Notes under the pieces: generated by a model | The model's database searches: none | What the model was told of the DNA's origin: nothing | What the model saw: the letters and a program-made list of their open reading frames with translations, nothing else | Program-made: the position numbers and the translations under genes | Shown here: one piece after another, positions 1 to 12,829 of the stretch | Layout of the letters: each line of letters opens with the position of its first letter | Numbering within the stretch: position 1 is the first letter of the stretch | From: Salpingoeca rosetta | Lineage: Eukaryota > Protista > Choanoflagellata | Direction: 5' to 3' | DNA: 64,000 nucleotides | NCBI GenBank assembly: GCA_033442325.1 | Contig: JAWQFM010000006.1 | Span: forward strand, 2,025,386-2,089,385

Positions 1-86
1 TGTGTGGGGGGGGGGCTGGTCCATCGTAATTGGGGGAGGGGTTCCATGGTAGCACGGGGTTGTGTGGCTGTGTGTCCATGCTAGTT

Positions 87-124
<38 letters not shown>

Positions 125-127
125 GTG

Positions 128-310
128 TGTGTGTGGTGGGCTGGTCATTGACTCCCTCAGTAGTAAAACGGGTTTACTGAGTGCTTGCGCAAGAGAACGA
201 GTGTGTCAAACGCTTAATGGTTCGCAAAGAGAAATCCGGCGTCTTGGGCAGGTGTCTTGTTGGTGTTGATCCGGGGTGAAGCCAAAATGGCTTCTCAGGT
301 GGAGTCCACA
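128..310 (-). ncRNA. Candidate Fanzor omegaRNA (scaffold ~308-148 plus ~20-nt guide 147-128)
   Basis: Overlaps the last ~45 codons of the Fanzor ORF. Hairpins at 294-278 (GAAGCCA/TGGCTTC) and 181-156 (CTCAGTA/TACTGAG, containing the stop codon). The second hairpin is followed directly by GGAGTCAA (155-148), whose GGAGTC can pair with GACTCC at 306-301. Boundaries are inferred. Confidence 0.5.
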
Positions 311-2637
311 AGCCAAGGGGCAAATCGTGTCTCAGGCCGAGACCGATAAGCCCGATGGCGGTGGCTCCAACGACGTCGCGGTCTCGCGCGACGCCGCATG
401 CCGGGCAACGCGTCAAACGCGTTGCCGAGGAGTATTGTCCTTGCACACCGCAGCAGTAGGTGTACTTGCTGCTGCGGTACTCGCTGGTAGTCTGTGTGTG
501 ATTGTGTGTGAGTGTGTGTGCGTGTGAGGTAGTGCATGCACCGACTAACCCTATAATTCACATGGAGACACATCCATACTCTCTCTCACACTCTCTCTCC
601 TCACCTGAACGTCGAGCAGCTTGCTGATGTGTTTGCGAAGTTGTCCCGTTGGGCCGTGCAGACCTGCTCCTCGAGTTCTGAAGCCGTTGCTGTGTGTGAG
701 TGAGTGTGTGAGTGAGTGAGTGAGTGGGTGTGTGGGTGTGTGTGTGAAACAAAGAAAACAACAACGTACCTTGCCGCGTCGCCCCAAAAAACCTTGGCGC
801 CGGGGAATGTTTTAGCGACTCGCAACGCAAACGCGCGCAAGTCCCGCCGCCGTGCCAAAAAGCCATGGAGCAGTTGTTTCCTGTGCCGTCTTGTGAACTT
901 GGTCCGAGTATGCTGGCGGTGTGCCAGCTCCTCAATCGTATGGGGATGTCGTATGGGTCTCTGCTGCTCCACGCCTTGCTGCGCTGCTTGCCATGCTTCC
1001 TTGTGTGCCTGCCTTTTCTCCCGTCGCGCCTTTTTCTGCTTCGACGAGAGAAGGCGACAGTGGAGGAAGTTTGCCCAGCGCTGTTGCCTGTAGCGCAGAA
1101 CCCGCCCCGTCTGTACGCAAGCCAGTGTCACTGGGACGCGTACGCCGGGATCGCACCCAACCACGGTTGGTTGGGCAGTCCTCTGACGCAAGCGACACTT
1201 GCGACGGCGACGGCGACGGCGACGACGGGATCTTGTGCGTCGCTGGCTCTTGGTCAACTTGTCCTTGCTGGCATTCTGATCCGCAACGACCTTGCCACCA
1301 TTCTTGTTCTTGGCAGCCCCCTTCGGCTTCTCCTCTACCTGCAGGCAGACGTGTGCTGCGACTCCGTCCGTTACGAAGGACGTCGCTTCCTTGAGCCGCT
1401 CGTGGTCTCGAGGGCGCCTTGGGCTGAAGAAGTCATCAAGGCGAGACCCATCGCCTTGACGGGGTTGTATCTTGAGGAGGCGCAGCGTGGATTTGGAGAA
1501 GCGCAGGTGTCTTGTGCCTCGAAACAGGGGAAGGAGCGGTGGGTGCTTGTAACGGATGTGGCTGTGCAGCAGGAAGACAAGGAGACAAGGTGCATGTGAG
1601 TGTGTGAGATAGTAGTTGACATGAGCGACGAGCAGTGCACATGGACACATGCATCAGACACACCTGTACTGCCGCAGTGCCTGGTTGACTGCAAACACAA
1701 AGCCCAGGCGCTCCTCATTTGTCTTGCAATCTGTGAGCAGGTCTCGCAGCTCAGCGTACTCAAGATCATCCTCAACTGAGTCCTTCTCTTGGTCCTCCTG
1801 GTCCTCCTGCTCTTGCTCCTTTGCTTTCTGCCGCACATACCTGAAAGTACGCAGCCAGCGTGCTGGGGCGTGCCTGATGTGGAGTTTCAGGGCTCCTTGA
1901 AGCGTTCGGCAGGTCATGTCAAGGAGGTTGTGTGCGATGGCCTTGATCTGTGGTGGCGTGTTGACTGGGGTGGTGGCGTTTGGCATTGTGCGGCTGACGC
2001 CGCGAAGGGCCGATGTCTGCCGCGTGAAGGCTGTTGTGGAGACCTTGAGGGCCTCCCATAGGCCTGGTGCTTGGTACGGCTGCTTTTTAGCGCGGACAGC
2101 GCGGCGAGGCTGCTTCTTGGAGCATGTTGTGTGGCGAGGACGCTTCTGAGGACGAACAGCGCGCCGAGGCTGCTTCGTGGGAGGAGGCTGAAGCTCACGT
2201 GCCAGCACGCGCTGGGCCTCTCTTGTACTGACATCGTGGGCTGGCACCTTCTTCTTGCAGATGACAGCGAGCAGCGTATCAACGTCCTCTGGCCCAAAGC
2301 CATCGACCTGCGGGATGGCTGACGACTTGCCTTGACCAGGCCCCTTCCTTCGCCGCCGCCGGCGGCGCTTCCTTTTTCGTTTGCGCTTCTTCTCACTCTT
2401 CTCCTTCTCCTTCTCCTTCTTCTTCTTCTCCTCCTCCTCTTTTCGCTTCTTGATTCGCTCTTGGAGCTCGCTCTTCATATCCACTCCCTCTGTGCTCTGT
2501 AGCAGCTGCTCCAGCACCTTATCACTCGCCTTGCAGACGAGGTCGCTCACCCACTCCACGTGCTCCACACATTCCGCCACACGTGGGTCAAGGCCCAGGC
2601 TGGCAAAGGTCCGTGTCGCAGAGACAAACTTCTTCAT
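174..2637 (-). CDS. Fanzor (TnpB-like RNA-guided RuvC endonuclease), probably Fanzor1-type; 4 exons 2637-1664, 1561-770, 689-605, 491-174; ~722 aa
   Basis: Three GT-AG introns join the pieces in frame (974+792+85+318=2169 nt). The spliced protein has RuvC-I VVGCDPGVRVPVT (Asp codon 1152-1150), then VFWGDAASNGFRTRGAGLHGPTGQLRKHISKLLDVQTTSEYRSSK (Glu codon 482-480, in the Fanzor 'vdEyrTSk' position), Cys finger YCCG...RCPACG and RuvC-III RDRDVVGATAI (Asp codon 377-375). It also has LLPLFRGTRHLRFS and N-terminal MKKFVSATRT...VSDLVCKAS, which resemble Fanzor1 N-terminal regions. Confidence 0.9.
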
Positions 2638-2831
2638 GCTGAACAAGCCGGTGAAAATGGAGCAATCGATGGCCTTTTGTTTGGGTTTTGGGTGGGTGTG
2701 GTGCTTCGCGCGCGTTCTGCACTCCTCCCGCCGAATTCCCACAACCGGCAATGTTTTTGAAAGGCTTCCACGGTGAGGGGTTTTCACCTCCCTGATTTTG
2801 CCAACAAACAAACAAAAAGGAAACAACCAAC

Positions 2832-2914
2832 CAAGAAGGAAACAGGCAAACAAGAAGGAAACAGGCAAACAAGAGAAGGAAACAGGCAAACAAGAGAAGG
2901 AAACAGGCAAACAA
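2832..2914. repeat. Four tandem 19-21 nt repeats (aa(ga)gaaggaaacaggcaaac) upstream of the Fanzor ATG
   Basis: Directly visible; contiguous copies with no unique spacers. Confidence 0.9.
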
Positions 2915-2940
2915 CACCACACACTCTTCTTTTGAAAAAT

Positions 2941-2989
2941 TATGAAGGCGACATGGCGCACGCATGGCGTGCGCCATTTCGCCTTCATA
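2941..2989. other. 23-bp-stem inverted repeat/hairpin upstream of Fanzor
   Basis: tatgaaggcga-c-atggcgcacgc [atg] gcgtgcgccat-t-tcgccttcata: 22 of 23 positions pair, 3-nt loop. Confidence 0.9.
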
Positions 2990-4280
2990 TCCGCACCTGC
3001 GGCCACATATGGGCCAAAATGTGCCGTGCGGCAATAATGTGCCACATTGTGATGGGAGGTGGGTAAAGCTCATGTGTGTGGGAGCAGCAGCATCATCCCC
3101 TCGTGTGTGTGTGTGCATGTGGTGCACTCGCTCCTCAGCTTCCTCTGCACGGTTCACGCAGTCCTTGCACTTCTCTCTTTCTCTCTCTGTCTACACACAC
3201 ACGGATACACGGACACACACAGATACACACACACGGACACACACACAGATACACACGGACACACACGTGCACACACACACACACATGCGCACACACACAC
3301 ACACACGGATACACGGATACACGGACACGCACAGATACACACAGGCACGCTCCCCCCGCCCTCTCCCCCTCTCTCGCTGTTGCTCGTGCGTACACCTTTC
3401 TTTGCCGGCTGCTTAGACTATACTTACGCCACCGACGTCTTTGCACCCCCGACCTGCTTGGACGTCAGCCATGAAGCACTGATGCTGATGGCTCGAATAA
3501 CAGGCCCGTGTGTCCTCAAACGAACGCCAATCCCATGCGCCACGTGAACAGCGGCACTGCCCTTCCAAACAGAACGGCACCCCTCACCCGCTTGTGCAAC
3601 AAACGGGTCACCTTCTCCTCCCTCCCCGTCAGCTCTCTGCCTTGGCATGTGCGTTGCTCGTGGATGGTAAGATGGTGGGTGTCACCTGCGTTCCATCCAC
3701 TGCGCCGTGCTGNNNNNNNNNNNNNNNNNNNNNNNNNNNNNNNNNNNNNNNNNNNNNNNNNNNNNNNNNNNNNNNNNNNNNNNNNNNNNNNNNNNNNNNN
3801 NNNNNNNNNNNNNNNNNNNNNNNNNNNNNNNNNNNNNNNNNNNNNNNNNNNNNNNNNNNNNNNNNNNNNNNNNNNNNNNNNNNNNNNNNNNNNNNNNNNN
3901 NNNNNNNNNNNNNNNNNNNNNNNNNNNNNNNNNNNNNNNNNNNNNNNNNNNNNNNNNNNNNNNNNNNNNNNNNNNNNNNNNNNNNNNNNNNNNNNNNNNN
4001 NNNNNNNNNNNNNNNNNNNNNNGCGCACACAAACATAACGCACAACATCTTTTTTCTTCTTTTTTCTCTCCTTCCTCCCATAACAACACACATCAATTTT
4101 TATTACGCCACCACCAGCACCCGGCTTTCTTTGATTTCGTGCGCGTCGAGGAGACGCTGCACCATCTAGTAGTCTACAACTACGCCGGAATAATCACCTA
4201 GGCGGCAGCAGACCCACGACGGTGCTCCGATCATTTCCCACCAGAAGAGTTCTTCGAACAACATGCGCGGTGTGTGTGTG

Positions 4281-4404
<124 letters not shown>

Positions 4405-6302
4405 CATACATTCGCACTACTATCTTCGCCCACCAGCCTGCTACANNNNNNNNNNNNNNNNNNNNNNNNNNNNNNNNNNNNNNNNNNNNNNNNNNNNNNN
4501 NNNNNNNNNNNNNNNNNNNNNNNNNNNNNNNNNNNNNNNNNNNNNNNNNNNNNNNNNNNNNNNNNNNNNNNNNNNNNNNNNNNNNNNNNNNNNNNNNNNN
4601 NNNNNNNNNNNNNNNNNNNNNNNNNNNNNNNNNNNNNNNNNNNNNNNNNNNNNNNNNNNNNNNNNNNNNNNCATGTGTTGCACGCGTGCACACCTGATCA
4701 GACTCATCACGGGAACTGCCAGAGCCACACACCCACACATACGTGTTCGCCAACGCCCTCGCATCAATCAGCCATCCGCGACAGTGGCCATCATTTCATC
4801 AGCTTCGAAGGAGTGCTGCCAGCACAACCCACCCCTCGCCGCTTGTGCGTAACCGCATCACCACCCACCTTCTCCCCCTGGTTGTCGTCTTCGTCGTTGT
4901 GGCGGTTCTGCCTGCTGACTGGTGGCATGCATCGTCGCCCTCAGTTCATATCATGTCCATGTCTCTATCTATTCGTGTCATGTATGTTCAGCCCCCGTGC
5001 ACCCCTCCCTCCTCACTTACCGCATTTTGGTGTTGTGCCACCGCACTTGCTCCTCTGCCTCCAGTACATGAACAGCGGTGATTTCACGGCGTGCGTGCTT
5101 TCCCTCGGCCACACGGACGCGAGTGAGGAAGCAACTCTTGCATCCTGCATCTCAGGGTGCCAATCAAGCAACTCAACCTGCCGGTGAGTTGTGAAAGGCT
5201 GACGCAGCGGCGTCTTGGAGTGTCGGGGTGTACGCTGTGTACATACAGCTAACAGCAAGTAGTTGACTATGAACTTGCTATCTGGGCACGTTTTGTACTC
5301 TGTTCGAGGATTCCTTCTTGGCAGTGCTTGCCGCCTAAATGCCTATTGGGGTGTCATCTGGGTCCTGCATCAGTGCTTACCTCTGCTGCCTGANNNNNNN
5401 NNNNNNNNNNNNNNNNNNNNNNNNNNNNNNNNNNNNNNNNNNNNNNNNNNNNNNNNNNNNNNNNNNNNNNNNNNNNNNNNNNNNNNNNNNNNNNNNNNNN
5501 NNNNNNNNNNNNNNNNNNNNNNNNNNNNNNNNNNNNNNNNNNNNNNNNNNNNNNNNNNNNNNNNNNNNNNNNNNNNNNNNNNNNNNNNNNNNNNNNNNNN
5601 NNNNNNNNNNNNNNNNNNNNNNNNNNNNNNNNNNNNNNNNNNNNNNNNNNNNNNNNNNNNNNNNNNNNNNNNNNNNNNNNNNNNNNNNNNNNNNNNNNNN
5701 NNNNNNNNNNNNNNNNNNNNNNNNNNNNNNNNNNNNNNNNNNNNNNNNNNNNNNNNNNNNNNNNNNNNNNNNNNNNNNNNNNNNNNNNNNNNNNNNNNNN
5801 NNNNNNNNNNNNNNNNNNNNNNNNNNNNNNNNNNNNNNNNNNNNNNNNNNNNNNNNNNNNNNNNNNNNNNNNNNNNNNNNNNNNNNNNNNNNNNNNNNNN
5901 NNNNNNNNNNNNNNNNNNNNNNNNNNNNNNNNNNNNNNNNNNNNNNNNNNNNNNNNNNNNNNNNNNNNNNNNNNNNNNNNNNNNNNNNNNNNNNNNNNNN
6001 NNNNNNNNNNNNNNNNNNNNNNNNNNNNNNNNNNNNNNNNNNNNNNNNNNNNNNNNNNNNNNNNNNNNNNNNNNNNNNNNNNNNNNNNNNNNNNNNNNNN
6101 NNNNNNNNNNNNNNNNNNNNNNNNNNNNNNNNNNNNNNNNNNNNNNNNNNNNNNNNNNNNNNNNNNNNNNNNNNNNNNNNNNNNNNNNNNNNNNNNNNNN
6201 NNNNNNNNNNNNNNNNNNNNNNNNNNNNNNNNNNNNNNNNNNNNNNNNNNNNNNNNNNNNNNNNNNNNNNNNNNNNNNNNNNNNNNNNNNNNNNNNNNNN
6301 NN

Positions 6303-7003
6303 TGCACGCAAGCAAGGTCTGCAGACTTCGCTTCAACGCACAACACTGGGGCTGGCGCTGAGCCGACCGTGCGCGATGCTGTGCAGCGTGGCCCGTTCAA
6401 AGTGCACCTGCAGCACAAGCCCGGCCGTTTCGTCCGGGTGCATGGCGTAGTACGACAGCGCCTTGTTGAGGTGGTTTCTCTGCACCTTGCTCGCCTTGCT
6501 GGCAGCAGTGCGTGCTGCCGCCGCCGCCCACCGCCGATGCACGAGCCCAAGGCGATGGTGCGCCTCCCCCGAGCTTCAGCGACACAGCGCGACGCATTGC
6601 ACTGATCCAGGCCGCGTTGTCGTGCCGGCCGGCGGTGGCGGGCGCGGACGTGAGGTTGCGGCTGATGTCTGCAAAGATGGCGATGGCGCTGTTGAGGTAC
6701 GAGTCCACGTGCGTATCGTCGCGAAGGCCGGGGGCAGCACTCGCCAGCAGCGCCGCAAACCCAAGATGCGTGCCGCCCAGCTCAAGCTGGATCTGGTCCC
6801 ACAACTGCGGGTGCACGGCGCGGCGCGCAAGGCAGTCCTTCGCCTGCTGGTAGTACTGGATGGCGTGCATGTGCAGGTTGCGGTCAGCGGTTGACGCGAC
6901 AGCATGGGGACTGGCACCTGCCGTGCCCATGGTGGTGGTGGTGGTGTTGGTGGTGGTTGCTGCTTGTGGCATATTGGCATCCGACTGGCTGCGTTGGCTT
7001 TCT

Positions 7004-7035
<32 letters not shown>

Positions 7036-10000
7036 TGATTGTTGTTGTTGTTGCTGTTGTTGTGGCTGCGGCTGTNNNNNNNNNNNNNNNNNNNNNNNNN
7101 NNNNNNNNNNNNNNNNNNNNNNNNNNNNNNNNNNNNNNNNNNNNNNNNNNNNNNNNNNNNNNNNNNNNNNNNNNNGCCTGCTGCCGTGTGCGTGGTGCAG
7201 GGTCTGGCTGGCCAACTCTCGCCGCAGTTCCCCCAGCAGTGTCGTGCGCCACGGCCCGCTCCCAGATGCAGCCGCCTCCAGCCGTTGCCGTTGCCGCTGC
7301 CCGCTATCACCACCACCACCACCACCACTACCATCATCACCATCACCACCATCGCCATCGTCGTCGTTGGTGCTGGCTTTCGTGTCCGTGTGAGCGTCGG
7401 GTTGTTCTGATGCTGATGGCCGTGCTGACTTGTCCTTACTTGCATCGTGCACTGCGCCACTGCCACCACCATCGCCACCACCACCGCCACGACGCCGCGC
7501 ACGCTGTGCTTCCTGCGCATTCATGTGGAGTTGGTTGCGCGCGTAACTGATGCGCATGAGCTTGGCCAGGTTGCAGTTGATGACGGCCTGGTTCACGCGG
7601 TCCCGCAGGTTGCGAAACGCCGCCAGCGCGCGGAAGAAATGCGCACACGCCATTTGCTTCTGCTCTTCAAATTGCGCGGCAGACCAGGCAGTGAGTACCG
7701 GCATCTCCGATAGCTGGTCCATCAGCACTTTGGCCATCTCGTTGTGCGCGTTGCCCGTCTGCCGCACCAGCGTCTGCTCCTCCATCAGAGAGGCCTGCGA
7801 GTGTGTGTATGGTTTTGTGTGTGCGTGAGCGATAAGGGGAACATATGTGCCAGAGACAGGGCAAGAACAAACCAAGAGTCAAATAAGACGAGCAATCAAA
7901 CACACACACACACGCGCGCGCGCGCACACACACACGCACACACACACGCACACACACACACACACACACACAGACAGACACAACCAAGCAACCACAAACG
8001 CGCGCGCATCCCCCCCCACGCACACACACGCACACACACATGTACAGCCACCGCACGTTGTGGATAAAGTCGTAGAGAGCGAGTGCCGCCTTTGCCAGTG
8101 CCGCTCTGTCGCTGGGAAGAGGAAACGAGACAACGGCCTGGCGCTGGAGCAGCGATCCCCCAAAAGTGCTTGGAATCGAACCAAATTGCTGGCCCCAATC
8201 ACGCGTGTCGCCATCACCACCAGCACTGTTGCCTACACCACTGCCATTCCGGCCGACCTTGTCCTCGCTCGAACCGCTCGCCTTCATCACCATATCGCCA
8301 TCATCACCGTCATCGTTGTCATCGTCGTCATTATTGTCAGTTTGTGCTGTTGGCGGAGGTGTTGCCGATGTTGACGGTGGCGGCGGTGCGCTGCTGCAGC
8401 GGCTGTTGTCGTTGCTGGTGGTGGCCCCTGGAGCTGTCACCATCACACGCGCGCGTCCAATCAAGCAGCCACACCTCCTTCGTCGGCACCACATGCCCAC
8501 ACCCGCCCCCTTTCCCTGCAGAAGAAGAAGAAGAAGAAGAAGAAGAAGAAGAAGAAGAAGAAGAAGAAGAAGAAGAAGAAGAAGAAGAAGAAGAAGAAGA
8601 AGAAGAAGAAGAAGAAGAAGAAGAAGAAGAAGAAGAAGAAGAAGAAGAAGAAGATGATGAGGTGGAGGAGAAGGTGGTGGTAGTAGAGGAAGAGATGATG
8701 ATGATGATGATGATGATGAAGAAGNNNNNNNNNNNNNNNNNNNNNNNNNNNNNNNNNNNNNNNNNNNNNNNNNNNNNNNNNNNNNNNNNNNNNNNNNNNN
8801 NNNNNNNNNNNNNNNNNNNNNNNNGATGAGGTGGAGGAGGAGGTGATGGTAGTAGAGGAGGAGGTGGTGGTAGTAGAGGAAGAGGTAGTGGAGGAAGAGG
8901 TAGTGGAGGATGTGGCGGTGGTGTCCCACCGCGCCAGAGCCGCATCCTGCCGTGTGCGGTATGTTGCCTCTGCCATCTGCTGGGGAAGGTGCTGGGGTGC
9001 GTCGTGGTGCAGCGCCGCAAGCGCCAGGAGCGCGTGTGCGGCCAGCGGCAACACTTTACCAAGCAGGTCGTCTTCTTGCTTCACGTGTGTCTGCAGCTGC
9101 TCTGCCGCCCTGATGGCAATGATGGGGCCCGCTGCTGGTGGCGGCGTTGGTGGTAATCGCGATCGCGATGGCGATTGTGTCGAATGTGCTGTCGTTGTCG
9201 TTGTCGTTGTCGTTGTTGTTGTGGTGGTGGTGGTTGTGCGCGATTGGTGGCCGTCCACGTGTTGTCGACCAGCCCTTGATGCATCGCCGCTGCGCTTGCT
9301 CTCCAGCTGTTCATCACCCGCGCCATTGACTCTGCTATCATTGCTCGCTGCACTCCCCCCCTCACCACCTTCCAGCTTACCACCACTACTGCCATCGCCT
9401 CCACGCTCTTCCGTTGTCATCACCATCCCCATCAGCACCGTCACCATCCCCATCAGCACCTTGACCTCCGCCGTCACCACCGTCATACCACGTGCTTGCT
9501 CGGCGCGCGCCGGTGCGGCACCGCAGGCACAGGTCACAAAAGCGGACGGTGGATCCAAACTTCCCGCGCTGCAACGCAAGCTTGGTCCCGCGCTGCAACG
9601 CAAGCTTGGCCAGCGTTGCGTAATGGTGTGCGGCGCGCGTGAGCACCAGCTCCAGCAGCTGCCGGCTGTGGCCGTCCTGTGGGTTGTCTGCAATCCACTC
9701 CACCGCTGGCTCCAACAGGTCCAAGGCAACGAGCTGTGCATGGTACGCATCAGTGTCGGGTGGCCGACGCGGTGGCGGTGATGATGAAGATGTTGGTGGT
9801 GTTGCTGTTGATGATGACGAAGCACTGGCACCAGCACGACCACTGGCACCAGCACGACTACGCCCCTGCCCCTGCTGCTGCTGCTGCTGCTGTTGCTTGT
9901 GTGCGCTTGGCGTGCGGGCTGCACCACGTCTTCCATCACTGCCATCACCACCACCATCACTACCATCACTACCATCACTACCATCACGACTGCCACCATC

Positions 10001-11479
10001 GCCATCGCCACGATGATCAGCGAGGTTGAGCCGGGCGAGGACGTGCGGTGGCATCTGGCTCAGGTGCAGGTTGATGGCGGCTGCAAGCTTCGGATACCGC
10101 TCTGCCTCCACCAGGTTACGTGCGTTGGCCAGGAGTCGACACACCGTTGCATCATCGTCGTCCGTCTGGGGCTGGTCGTCCTCCAAAATGCGGATGGCAA
10201 TCTTGTACAGCAGCAGCGCGACCGAGTGCGAAAACGGGTTGGTCACGTTTGAGTTTGGGTCTGTGGACAAGGACCGCGATTGCTCAATGAGGGCGGTGAA
10301 GTCGTACAGCCGCACAATGTCGTCATCCTCGCCCTTGTACAGCCAGTAGGTGTGTCCTTCCTCCGTGCAGTTCTTGTTGAGGAAGGTCTTCATGGATTGC
10401 GCAATGGCCACAACGGCCTCTGGATCAAACCCGCTCATCTCGGGCAGGTCCTCTGTTGTGATTGTCTCGTAGCGTGACACAGCACCGTTCTGTGTTGGCG
10501 GTGGAGGGGGGGATGTAATTGGGCCGTGTTGTGTTGTGGTGGTTGGGCGTGATGTGTTGGTTGTGTATNNNNNNNNNNNNNNNNNNNNNNNNNNNNNNNN
10601 NNNNNNNNNNNNNNNNNNNNNNNNNNNNNNNNNNNNNNNNNNNNNNNNNNNNNNNNNNNNNNNNNNNNNNNNNGCAAACACATAAACACATACACACACA
10701 CACAAACAAACAAACACAAATACACACACACAAGCGAACACAAACTCTCTCACACACACACACACAAACTCACGCACCGTGTGGTAGCACATCATAATCT
10801 CTGGGACGTTGCACATGAGGTTGTCCAGCCAGAGATCCATGCCAGTGAGCACGTTGATTGACTGTCCGTCCTCCCGCAGCTTCAGGCTGATGGCCGGCAC
10901 GGGCTTCTCGCCATCGCCAAAGATGGCAAGGTCAGACGTGACGACAGAGCGGATGTCGTGGAAGGACCACAGGTGGTCGTGTGTCTGCCAATACGAGCGA
11001 ACAGGAAGACGCTGCTCCGCCTGTCCAACAACCGTCGACAGCAGCAGTTGGTTTGCCTCATGCCCACCACTACCGCTACCGCTGTTGCCACTGCTGTTGT
11101 CAATGCTGGCGCTGGTGGTATTCGTGTCCTCGTTTGATGGGGGAGGTGGCAGGGAGAGCGATGCCGGAAGGTGTGCAAGCGACGTGGATGTCTGTGACGA
11201 CGAGTTGCAAATCGCTGATGGCGGTGTCGCTGTTCCCGACGACACCGCACCATCGTGCACAGCGCTGCTGCCGTGATCCAAACTACCATTACCACCACCA
11301 CCATCATCGCTACCAGTGCCATCGTTGTTTGAGTCATTGGCATGATACAGCGGCGTGAATGGAAGAGGAATGGGGACTTGGTCGCGCTGGCTCACGTGTG
11401 AGAGAGGAAGGTACTCCAGCTGTGGCAGTGCCGGCAAGACATCTCCCGCCCTACTCACCACAGTGGTGGGCGGTTTCAT
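6303..11479 (-). CDS. EDRF1: Erythroid differentiation-related factor 1 (EDRF1)-like gene; multi-exon, interrupted by gaps, with apparent frameshift(s); 5' and 3' ends uncertain
   Basis: Motifs SDLAIFGDGEKPVPAISLKLRE...INVLTGMDLWLDNLMCNVPEIMMCYH and AIAQSMKTFLNKNCTEEGHTYWLYKGEDDDIVRLYDFT, plus C-terminal GNAHNEMA, NQAVINCNLAKLMRI and AIQYYQQA, match the EDRF1 family as recalled. Confidence 0.85.
8520..8655. repeat. (GAA)n microsatellite, about 45 units, next to an assembly gap
   Basis: Directly visible; could encode poly-Ser on the minus strand within the EDRF1-like gene. Confidence 0.95.
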
Positions 11480-11518
11480 TCAAAAAGAAAGCCCACAATG
11501 GCCAGGTACCATTGGGCG

Positions 11519-11560
<42 letters not shown>

Positions 11561-12829
11561 CGTGAGGGTGTGGATTGGAAAAGCTCCAACAAGAGGCAGC
11601 GCAGGCTGTCATGCACAGCGCACAGGCAAGCCACTCACAGACAACCAACGCGGCTCGCCATCCTCGTTGATTCAGCAGCATGCAATCTCGAATCACCAGC
11701 AGATGTCTACGGGATAATCCAAACCGTTTGTTGGATGGAGCTTCTCGCTTCGCCCAGCATATCAGGCTGTCGACCCCCTGTACCGCCAACACAGAATGTG
11801 ACACAGTCGATGGGATGAGTTGTGGGCGACCGCGGTCGGTTGGAAGCCAAGACCTGCATATTACGAAGCGAGGGCATGTGGCAAAGAGAAATACACACAC
11901 ACACACACGCACGCACACACACACACACACACGCACACACGCACGCATGAAAGCACAAGCAGGAGCCAGACAGTACAAGCCCCTCCGCCCAAGCCACACA
12001 CCTACATCGTAGGAGCTGGTGGCGAAGTCAGACGTGCGTTGGAGACGCACCAGCCAGAAGTTGACCAGCTTGTCGTCAAGAAGCTAGTTGCCATGAAGTC
12101 TGGCAATGGATGTGTTGGACGTTAAGGCGGAGATGACCACAAGGCAGCCACGATCGCGAACAAGGGGGCAAACAGAAAACAAGACATGGGCTGATGAGAT
12201 GACGCAAGCACCGTGACCCTAGCTCGAACCTGATGTAGCTGCGGTCGAGGGTCTGCGGTTTGCCAACACCAACAACGACCATCACTTCCTTGCTCATCCA
12301 GCGGGTGTGATTGCGGCCCAGCTTCTCGTTATGGCGCGGTGCTGGTTGCGTGAGAGAGAGAGAGAGAGAGAGTGTGTGTGTGTGTGTGTGCGTGAGAGAG
12401 AATGAGAGTGTGTGTGTGTGTGTGTGCGGGTGAGACAGAGAGAGAGTGTGTGTGTTCATGTTTGTATGTGTGTGCGCGACGTGTGGTGGCGAGTCTATCA
12501 ACCACAACCTCTGTGCAGGTGGGTGTAACACTTGTGCGGTTGGTTTTTGCGGAACGAACCTTTGTGGTCTGCGCTGTCGGGCTCAGCGGCGTTTCCGCCT
12601 CAGCATTAGTGGGGCGAAGTGCGCGCGCTGCTGCCGTTGACGTTGCTGTCTCGCTGCAACAGTTTGTTCGCGTACACACACGTCCTGCGGTTGTTGGTGA
12701 TGCCTTCTTCTAATACATAGCCCGCGCCGTGCTTCCCTCGGGCGAGGGTGTGCATGCTGGCTGTAAACTGTTCGAATCAAACCATGCACACGTGCACAGA
12801 GACACAGAAGGAGTGACGGGAGTGCCGCG

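Follow-up and report, generated by a model that had tools for sequence, protein, structure and literature searches.

Structure of the gene

The window considered here is a stretch of 64,000 nucleotides (nt) from the choanoflagellate Salpingoeca rosetta (C6:2025386-2089385 of a 55.4-Mb assembly in 68 contigs). Near its beginning, on the minus strand at positions 174-2637, lies a gene that is very probably real and apparently intact, with four exons, and that encodes a Fanzor1-type protein, which descends, in eukaryotes, from TnpB, a nuclease of bacterial transposons. The Fanzors are RNA-guided nucleases of eukaryotes with no established natural role. The initial annotation of the window placed its host among the unicellular relatives of animals. 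The genome is indeed that of S. rosetta, since the protein PTSG_12014 of this species corresponds, exon by exon and with 100% identity, to the C8 locus of the assembly.

The coding frame consists of four minus-strand pieces of 974, 792, 85 and 318 nt. Scripted splicing joins them into 2169 nt, divisible by three, which encode 722 amino acids (aa) and a stop codon, exactly as had been proposed. There are no internal stops in the spliced frame and a single terminal TAA at 176-174. The four fragments recur in the mechanical list of open reading frames (ORFs), where they are spread over three frames. Exon 1 (1664..2637) starts with the ATG at 2637 and encodes aa 1-324 plus two nucleotides, exon 2 (770..1561) encodes aa 325-588, and exon 4 (174..491) encodes aa 618-722 and carries the stop codon. 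The short exon 3 (605..689) encodes aa 589-617, NGFRTRGAGLHGPTGQLRKHISKLLDVQ, and fits the family motif RGGGxKGPvxeLrrrL. All introns are of the GT..AG type. Intron 1 (1562..1663, 102 nt, phase 2) starts with GTGTGT, intron 2 (690..769, 80 nt, phase 2) with GTACGT, and intron 3 (492..604, 113 nt, phase 0) with GTGAGG. All three end with CACAG, their 3' ends being formed by a pyrimidine/CA-rich tract followed by CAG.

The exon 1/2 junction (..ALRQY/SHIRYK..) is identical in the NCBI model PTSG_06033, which describes a paralogous copy on contig C15 and has the same start as well. Exons 3 and 4 tile without gaps onto uninterrupted exons of the paralogues at C2 and C8 (alignment A1, tblastn), and the site of intron 3 is continuous, with no alignment gap, both in these paralogues and in all intron-free relatives. 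Further, aa 384-682 form one collinear domain, running through junctions 2/3 and 3/4, in a hidden Markov model (HMM) of intron-free relatives. Taken together, the shared junction, the tiling and the collinearity make the splice model more than a chance assembly of frames. The paralogous SAl-2 family of the same genome has an intron of equal phase, phase 2, no more than two codons away from the position of intron 2; the corresponding exon of PTSG_12014 ends with GD and a split codon. Exon 1 differs from the C15 copy by two indels of 27 and 30 nt, both in frame, whereas those upstream of the ATG are of 5, 1, 22, 9 and 23 nt. Since the former are multiples of three and the latter are irregular, the ATG at 2637 is supported as the start codon. 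A further copy, on contig C28, was considered as an intron-less check of the junctions and rejected, as it is decayed and contains stops and frame shifts.

Protein motifs and family assignment

All motifs named in the initial annotation are present in the order given there: CDPG at 461-464, FWGD at 583-586, SEYRSSK at 620-626, CC at 630-631, CPAC at 646-649 and RDRD at 653-656 of the spliced protein. Exon 1 is rich in Lys, Arg and Glu and contains a tract resembling a nuclear localization signal (NLS), KKRKRKRKRRRRRRRK (aa 83-98, window 2344-2391), which is followed by a helical region. Exon 2 encodes a WED-like TDGV hairpin (aa 389-392) and the RuvC-I motif VVGCDPGV with D462 (codon 1152-1150), followed by a basic helical insert. 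The T, G, D, P and G columns of the hairpin and of the RuvC-I DPG are invariant in alignments A2 and A3. The strand VFWGD of the same exon has G585 (codon 783-781) at the old position of the RuvC-II glutamate. Exon 4 encodes the candidate alternative catalytic glutamate E621 (codon 482-480), the zinc ribbon C630-C631...C646-x2-C649 (window 396-455) and the RuvC-III pair R655-D656 (D codon 377-375), behind which there is a non-conserved tail of ~65 aa.

This arrangement agrees with the motif of Bao and Jurka, D-X(125,275)-[TS][TS]-X-X-[C4 zinc finger]-X(5,50)-RD. The distance from D462 to S624-S625 is 162 residues, the four cysteines are at 630, 631, 646 and 649, and the RD at 655-656 is five residues past C649. 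G585 and E621 align to the family columns FGxGG and sEfRTSK and form the rearranged site of the Fanzors. The catalytic residues D383, E541 and D606 of SpuFz1 (PMC10432273) have the counterparts D462, E621 and D656. In Fanzors the canonical RuvC-II glutamate is replaced by glycine or proline, and a conserved alternative glutamate, described as essential, is found downstream (PMC10432273, PMC10530073). Being common to all Fanzors and to some TnpBs (PMC10530073), the relocated glutamate does not discriminate between the types. The spacing from G585 to E621 is 36, equal to that of G500/E536 in SPu-1 (PMC3627910), as compared to 51 in the Fanzor2 protein ISvMimi_1 (PMC3627910 supplement).

Pfam, NCBIfam, PDB and ESM-Atlas were searched with single exons, and the whole 722-aa product was scored in local HMM scripts. 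Over its aa 4-46 (window 354-482), exon 4 reaches 27.9 bits with PF07282 (Cas12f1-like TNB), for which the gathering cut-off is 26.3, and a six-frame scan of the genome with the TNB model yields 28.4 bits for this gene. The match of exon 4 to NF040570 (guided_TnpB) has E 6e-5, far under the full-length cut-off of that model. Among the ESM-Atlas neighbours of exon 4, 96 of 100 are clusters with the TNB domain. Those of exon 2 are eukaryotic clusters, most commonly of the phylum Mucoromycota, and one of them also has a TNB domain. Exons 1-3 produced only noise with Pfam and NCBIfam. Single-sequence searches of PDB with exon 4, exon 2 and the proteins P0005 and P0002 returned nothing useful (the best match was Cas12m, E 0.85), and word-based homologue searches, for which exon 1 and, via PTSG_06033, the exon-2 region served as queries, found only PTSG_06033. 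The TNB matches support the membership of the gene in the TnpB-derived Fanzor family, as proposed from the start, at the level of sequence.

The type was addressed with profiles. Profile A1, made from the C-terminal module of this gene and two paralogues, has 70 protein matches in a library of 1.84 billion proteins, and the full-length ones are of two kinds. Proteins of the first kind (640-860 aa, plus one of 496 aa) carry the pattern 'lFGnGG..RGGGxKGP..sEfRTSKlC', which the window protein fits. The second kind comprises TnpB-like proteins (~400-610 aa) in which the spacer is longer; the HTH_OrfB_IS605 and OrfB_IS605 domains occur in some of them. In PDB, profile A2 finds SpuFz1 (8gkh, E 1.4e-25), GtFz1 (8.9e-15) and PpFz1 (2e-13). 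The matches to TnpB (ISDra2 TnpB at E 0.07), Cas12m and TranC have E-values of 0.001 or worse and cover the zinc ribbon only.

A Fanzor1-like HMM was built from 11 distant full-length relatives without this protein. It gives the spliced product 78.5 bits (E 2e-20 at Z = 1e6, aa 384-682), of which only the match to the WED and RuvC-I parts is independent of how the relatives were chosen. None of 200 shuffled sequences was reported at a very lax threshold. The TnpB/Fanzor2-like HMM gives the same product 36.8 bits. SAl-1 of the same genome has 25 bits with the Fanzor1-like HMM and 137 bits with the TnpB/Fanzor2-like one. The A2 matches, the HMM scores and the spacing of 36 support the Fanzor1 type put forward in the initial annotation, an indirect assignment made through likeness to metagenomic relatives rather than through a phylogeny. 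The relocated glutamate does not mark Fanzor1 in particular (PMC10530073).

Copies in the genome and selective constraint

There are three copies of the gene in the genome: the one in the window, which is the only intact copy, a truncated one on C15 and a decayed one on C28, which lacks exon 3. Over window 756-3078 as a whole, the identity of the C15 copy is 93% (98.5% in exon 1 and 97.6% in exon 2, indels not counted). Its exon 2 has suffered two 1-nt deletions, and exons 3-4 are missing. Collinear homology between the two loci, at 92-99% in blocks, extends from window 787 to at least 11,698 (C15:1068713-1080196), and one edge of the duplication falls within the CA repeat of intron 2 of the Fanzor gene. 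Thus a segmental duplication of 11 kb or more, which cuts through the gene at its edge, accounts for the C15 copy, and transposition does not. PTSG_06033 (554 aa; C15:1067182-1072454) has no RuvC-II/III and no zinc ribbon and is 93% identical to the exon-1 ORF. As the C15 copy is the duplication edge, this model is the annotated stump of the duplicate, that is, a pseudogene model. Among entries of 255-970 aa in the protein collection that was searched, none corresponds to the intact gene.

Comparison of the C6 and C15 copies over 588 shared codons yields 13.7 synonymous and 16.3 nonsynonymous changes, corresponding to a synonymous divergence (dS) of 0.034, a nonsynonymous divergence (dN) of 0.013 and a dN/dS ratio of 0.37. 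A binomial test gives P = 0.006, and P = 0.0005 when the last 12 codons, which are ragged, are left out. At this divergence a neutral frame of 2.2 kb would probably be broken by now, as the C15 copy was. The substitution pattern points to selection in one or both lineages since the duplication, with small counts and with gene conversion as a possible cause.

An EDRF1-like host gene (window 6400-11479, minus strand; EDRF1_N 192 bits, TPR_EDRF1 45 bits) lies on the same strand as the Fanzor gene, upstream of it, and is part of the duplicated block as well. No transposase or recombinase was seen nearby. Approximately 300 nt upstream of the ATG, at window 2941-2989, there is a near-perfect palindrome with arms of ~23 bp and a 4-nt loop. 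It occurs only at the C6 and C15 loci and therefore is not the terminus of a repeated element; it may be a promoter element or a relic of an end. The window contains runs of N at 3713-4022, 4446-4671, 5394-6302 and elsewhere.

Possible function and alternative explanations

If the protein is expressed, it would be expected to enter the nucleus, by analogy with SpuFz1 and other tested Fanzors (PMC10432273, PMC10530073). There its partner would be an RNA made at or close to the 3' end of its own gene, and the putative site of D462, E621 and D656 would cleave DNA that matches the guide and adjoins a short motif, as in SpuFz1. That the gene encodes an active RNA-guided nuclease today is possible but somewhat unlikely. 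If it is inactive, it would be either a recently immobilised, still intact passenger of a transposon or a gene that the host has co-opted for another role. The active programmable endonuclease of the initial annotation was overstated: the retained residues are its sole basis, no guide RNA, element ends or second intact copy was found, and transcription is almost nil. As CrFNuc of Chlamydomonas reinhardtii formed a ribonucleoprotein (RNP) and yet did not cut in vitro, retained residues are no proof of activity.

A number of observations weigh against the main reading, a real and intact Fanzor1-type gene, some of them at the level of the protein. The relatives that form the Fanzor1-like HMM were chosen via a profile that holds the C-terminus of this very protein. 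The N-terminal 383 residues have no significant alignment to the REC region of the family. The AlphaFold2 model of exon 2, made from a 14-row alignment, is of low confidence (mean predicted local distance difference test score 50), with the order beta-beta-beta-helices-beta. When this low-confidence model was compared with PDB by Foldseek, SpuFz chains came out on top at E 0.3 and a template modelling (TM) score of 0.26, and no match had an E-value of 0.001 or less. Finally, the zinc ribbon was initially described as CC...CxxC. The second knuckle, CPAC, is regular, but in the first one the cysteines are adjacent (CC), not CxxC; the same CC is found in SAl-2, in the C2 paralogue and in the protein P0066.

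Other such observations concern the locus and its transcripts. No second intact copy was found in the genome, and hence there is no sign of current mobility. The search for terminal inverted repeats, which like that for a guide RNA covered 173 nt of flank on the 3' side, revealed only (GT)n/(AC)n microsatellites at the gene. The upstream 439 nt are present only at the C6 and C15 loci of the genome. The 3' flank (window 1..173, minus strand), the expected place of a Fanzor guide RNA, is occupied by a (CA)n microsatellite from ~37 nt past the stop codon. Window 1-330 folds no better than shuffled sequences (z-score -0.67), and Rfam has no match at threshold; below it, there are miRNA-like matches on the palindrome and a fluoride riboswitch inside exon 2. 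The 3' end is not conserved with the C28 copy: homology to that copy extends no further than window 279, short of the stop codon. In two raw-read RNA runs (X14 and X15, about a quarter of each covered) there were 0 and 5 reads, respectively, and no splice joints, so the confirmation of the junctions by RNA sequencing that the initial annotation looked to did not materialise. The X15 reads stop near window 168. An X1 contig spans intron 1 unspliced and looks like DNA, and the X4 contigs are short and of low depth.

The gene might be a Fanzor2, or a plain TnpB-like gene, instead of a Fanzor1. Bao and Jurka in 2013 described two Fanzor families, SAl-1 and SAl-2, in this strain (Salpingoeca ATCC 50818) and classed both as Fanzor2, the only type given for it (PMC3627910), and choanoflagellates are placed under Fz2 in PMC10432273. 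The nearest paralogues of the window gene are the SAl-2 family and the C2 locus. A Fanzor2 would be expected to show a TnpB-like architecture with the HTH_OrfB_IS605 and OrfB_IS605 domains, a long spacing (~45-51 aa) to the alternative glutamate and an IS607 TnpA as neighbour. However, the HTH_OrfB_IS605 and OrfB_IS605 domains were not detected in any exon by Pfam even at E up to 10, the glycine-to-glutamate spacing is that of SPu-1 and not that of ISvMimi_1, the Fanzor1-like HMM scores more than twice as high as its counterpart, and only Fanzor1 structures were matched significantly. SAl-2 itself is missing from the tree alignment of PMC3627910 and leans towards the Fanzor1-like HMM (54.6 vs 42.6 bits). 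We therefore consider the Fanzor2 assignment very improbable; the published class of SAl-2 may be wrong, to judge by these scores.

A Fanzor1-type gene may at the same time be a young relic, a passenger that has lost its element ends and its mobility and whose frame is open merely for lack of time, with no present function. One intact copy beside one truncated and one decayed copy is what such a history would leave, and the absence of recognisable ends, the almost nil transcription and the non-canonical zinc knuckle are in line with it. So is the lack of a close orthologue in the 1.84-billion-protein library, where only the paralogue of S. rosetta itself scored high; this library and the word-indexed collection appear to include eukaryotic sets such as EukProt. 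However, the dN/dS of 0.37 is significantly below 1, a neutral frame of this length would be expected to have gained a stop or a frameshift at the observed dS, as the C15 copy took its two 1-nt deletions, all three splice-site pairs are canonical, and every catalytic residue is kept. On this evidence a relic is somewhat unlikely. Alternatively, the gene could have been domesticated, that is, fixed at one site free of the transposon as a single-copy, intron-bearing, nuclear-targeted gene, which is selectively kept for a host function, nuclease-dependent or not, such as RNA-guided binding or cutting of DNA. The single intact copy with signs of purifying selection would fit, as would the host-style introns, with intron 2 so near to the same-phase intron of SAl-2, the NLS-like tract, and the ordinary host gene next to it with no transposase in the vicinity. 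On the other hand, no orthologue was seen in other organisms, so that nothing indicates a long retention, the level of expression is very low, and the signal of selection comes from ~30 substitutions and could predate the immobilisation or reflect gene conversion. We hold domestication to be unlikely, clearly more so than a relic. If it were true, the locus would provide a tractable system for studying the native role of a Fanzor in a protist closely related to animals, as S. rosetta is amenable to transfection and editing. The copy is single, intact and apparently constrained, in a model organism close to animals. As no other copy is intact, one knockout or tagging experiment could test its function.

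Comparison with known Fanzors

The gene in the window is a previously undescribed, unannotated Fanzor gene relative to the set of PMC3627910, whereas its kind, the introns, the NLS and the relocated glutamate have already been published. It was initially called hidden, and it is indeed unannotated, but the Fanzors of this species were described in 2013 and intron-bearing Fanzors in 2023. Jiang et al. catalogued 3,655 Fanzors, choanoflagellates included, and reported capture of introns, gain of NLS and the rearranged site (PMC10530073). The accessible part of the supplements of PMC10432273 makes no mention of Salpingoeca. As the literature gives only Fanzor2 families for choanoflagellates, a Fanzor1-type gene there would slightly amend the distribution known so far.

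The best solved match of profile A2 is SpuFz1 of Spizellomyces punctatus (PDB 8GKH, 9CEU-9CEZ). The two proteins share the WED hairpin, the RuvC-I DPx, a Gly-Asp strand that replaces the RuvC-II glutamate, a substitute glutamate 36 residues further on within E-x-x-[ST][ST], the zinc ribbon and the RD. However, SpuFz1 is encoded by a single exon in an element of ~2.1 kb with 30-nt inverted repeats, which is present in dozens of copies and has a mapped guide RNA (PMC10432273), whereas the window gene has three introns and one intact copy, with no ends or guide RNA found. The N-terminal 383 aa of its product are highly basic and cannot be aligned, and the first zinc knuckle is CC. CrFNuc (Fanzor1c) likewise comes from a unicellular eukaryote, is encoded by a gene with introns and has a rearranged RuvC site. 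Unlike the window gene, it is carried by Helitron2 elements present in multiple copies, and a small RNA from its 3' side has been sequenced; its RNP was formed, but no cleavage in vitro was observed (PMC10530073). ISDra2 TnpB (PDB 8BF8, 8H1J), which is of the ancestral kind, has the same core of RuvC and zinc ribbon (TNB) and the RD motif. Its match to the profile is weak and restricted to the C-terminal 44 aa, and it has a canonical RuvC-II glutamate, a length of ~400 aa and neither introns nor an NLS, and is carried by IS200/IS605 elements.

Within the genome of S. rosetta, the window gene belongs neither to SAl-1 (C14, C29) nor to SAl-2 (C8, C12) and is closest to SAl-2 and the C2 paralogue, with ~30-35% identity to them over exons 3-4. 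With SAl-2 (PTSG_12014 / PTSG_12556) it shares the GD...E arrangement, the CC...CxxC ribbon and the phase-2 intron close to intron 2. SAl-2 is nevertheless a separate family, with proteins of 485-498 aa, a CCHC knuckle, a zinc ribbon split by an intron, and no intron at the site of intron 3, and it was published as Fanzor2, while the window gene is outside the PMC3627910 set. The SAl-2 loci (C8:1603578-1606670 and C12:268783-271881) have this GD...E arrangement, which is Fanzor1-like, with a spacing of 34 residues.

The further SAl-2-like paralogue, at C2:2276255-2279407, has a TNB domain (28.7 bits). One of its exons contains VVGLDPGTR, and a second, uninterrupted exon contains VHRGRGGG...DEFRTTRYSLCC...CKSCG..RDRD. 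The GD strand seems to be lost in this paralogue (..SDFLWS..).

P0023 (704 aa), among the closest of the full-length relatives, is encoded at positions 10001-12115 of a 30-kb metagenome contig from ENA, which is densely packed and whose genes were called as single ORFs. These include the Rpb2 subunit of RNA polymerase, encoded by a single ORF, a RING/DTC protein and a methyltransferase, and the contig looks like that of a giant virus.

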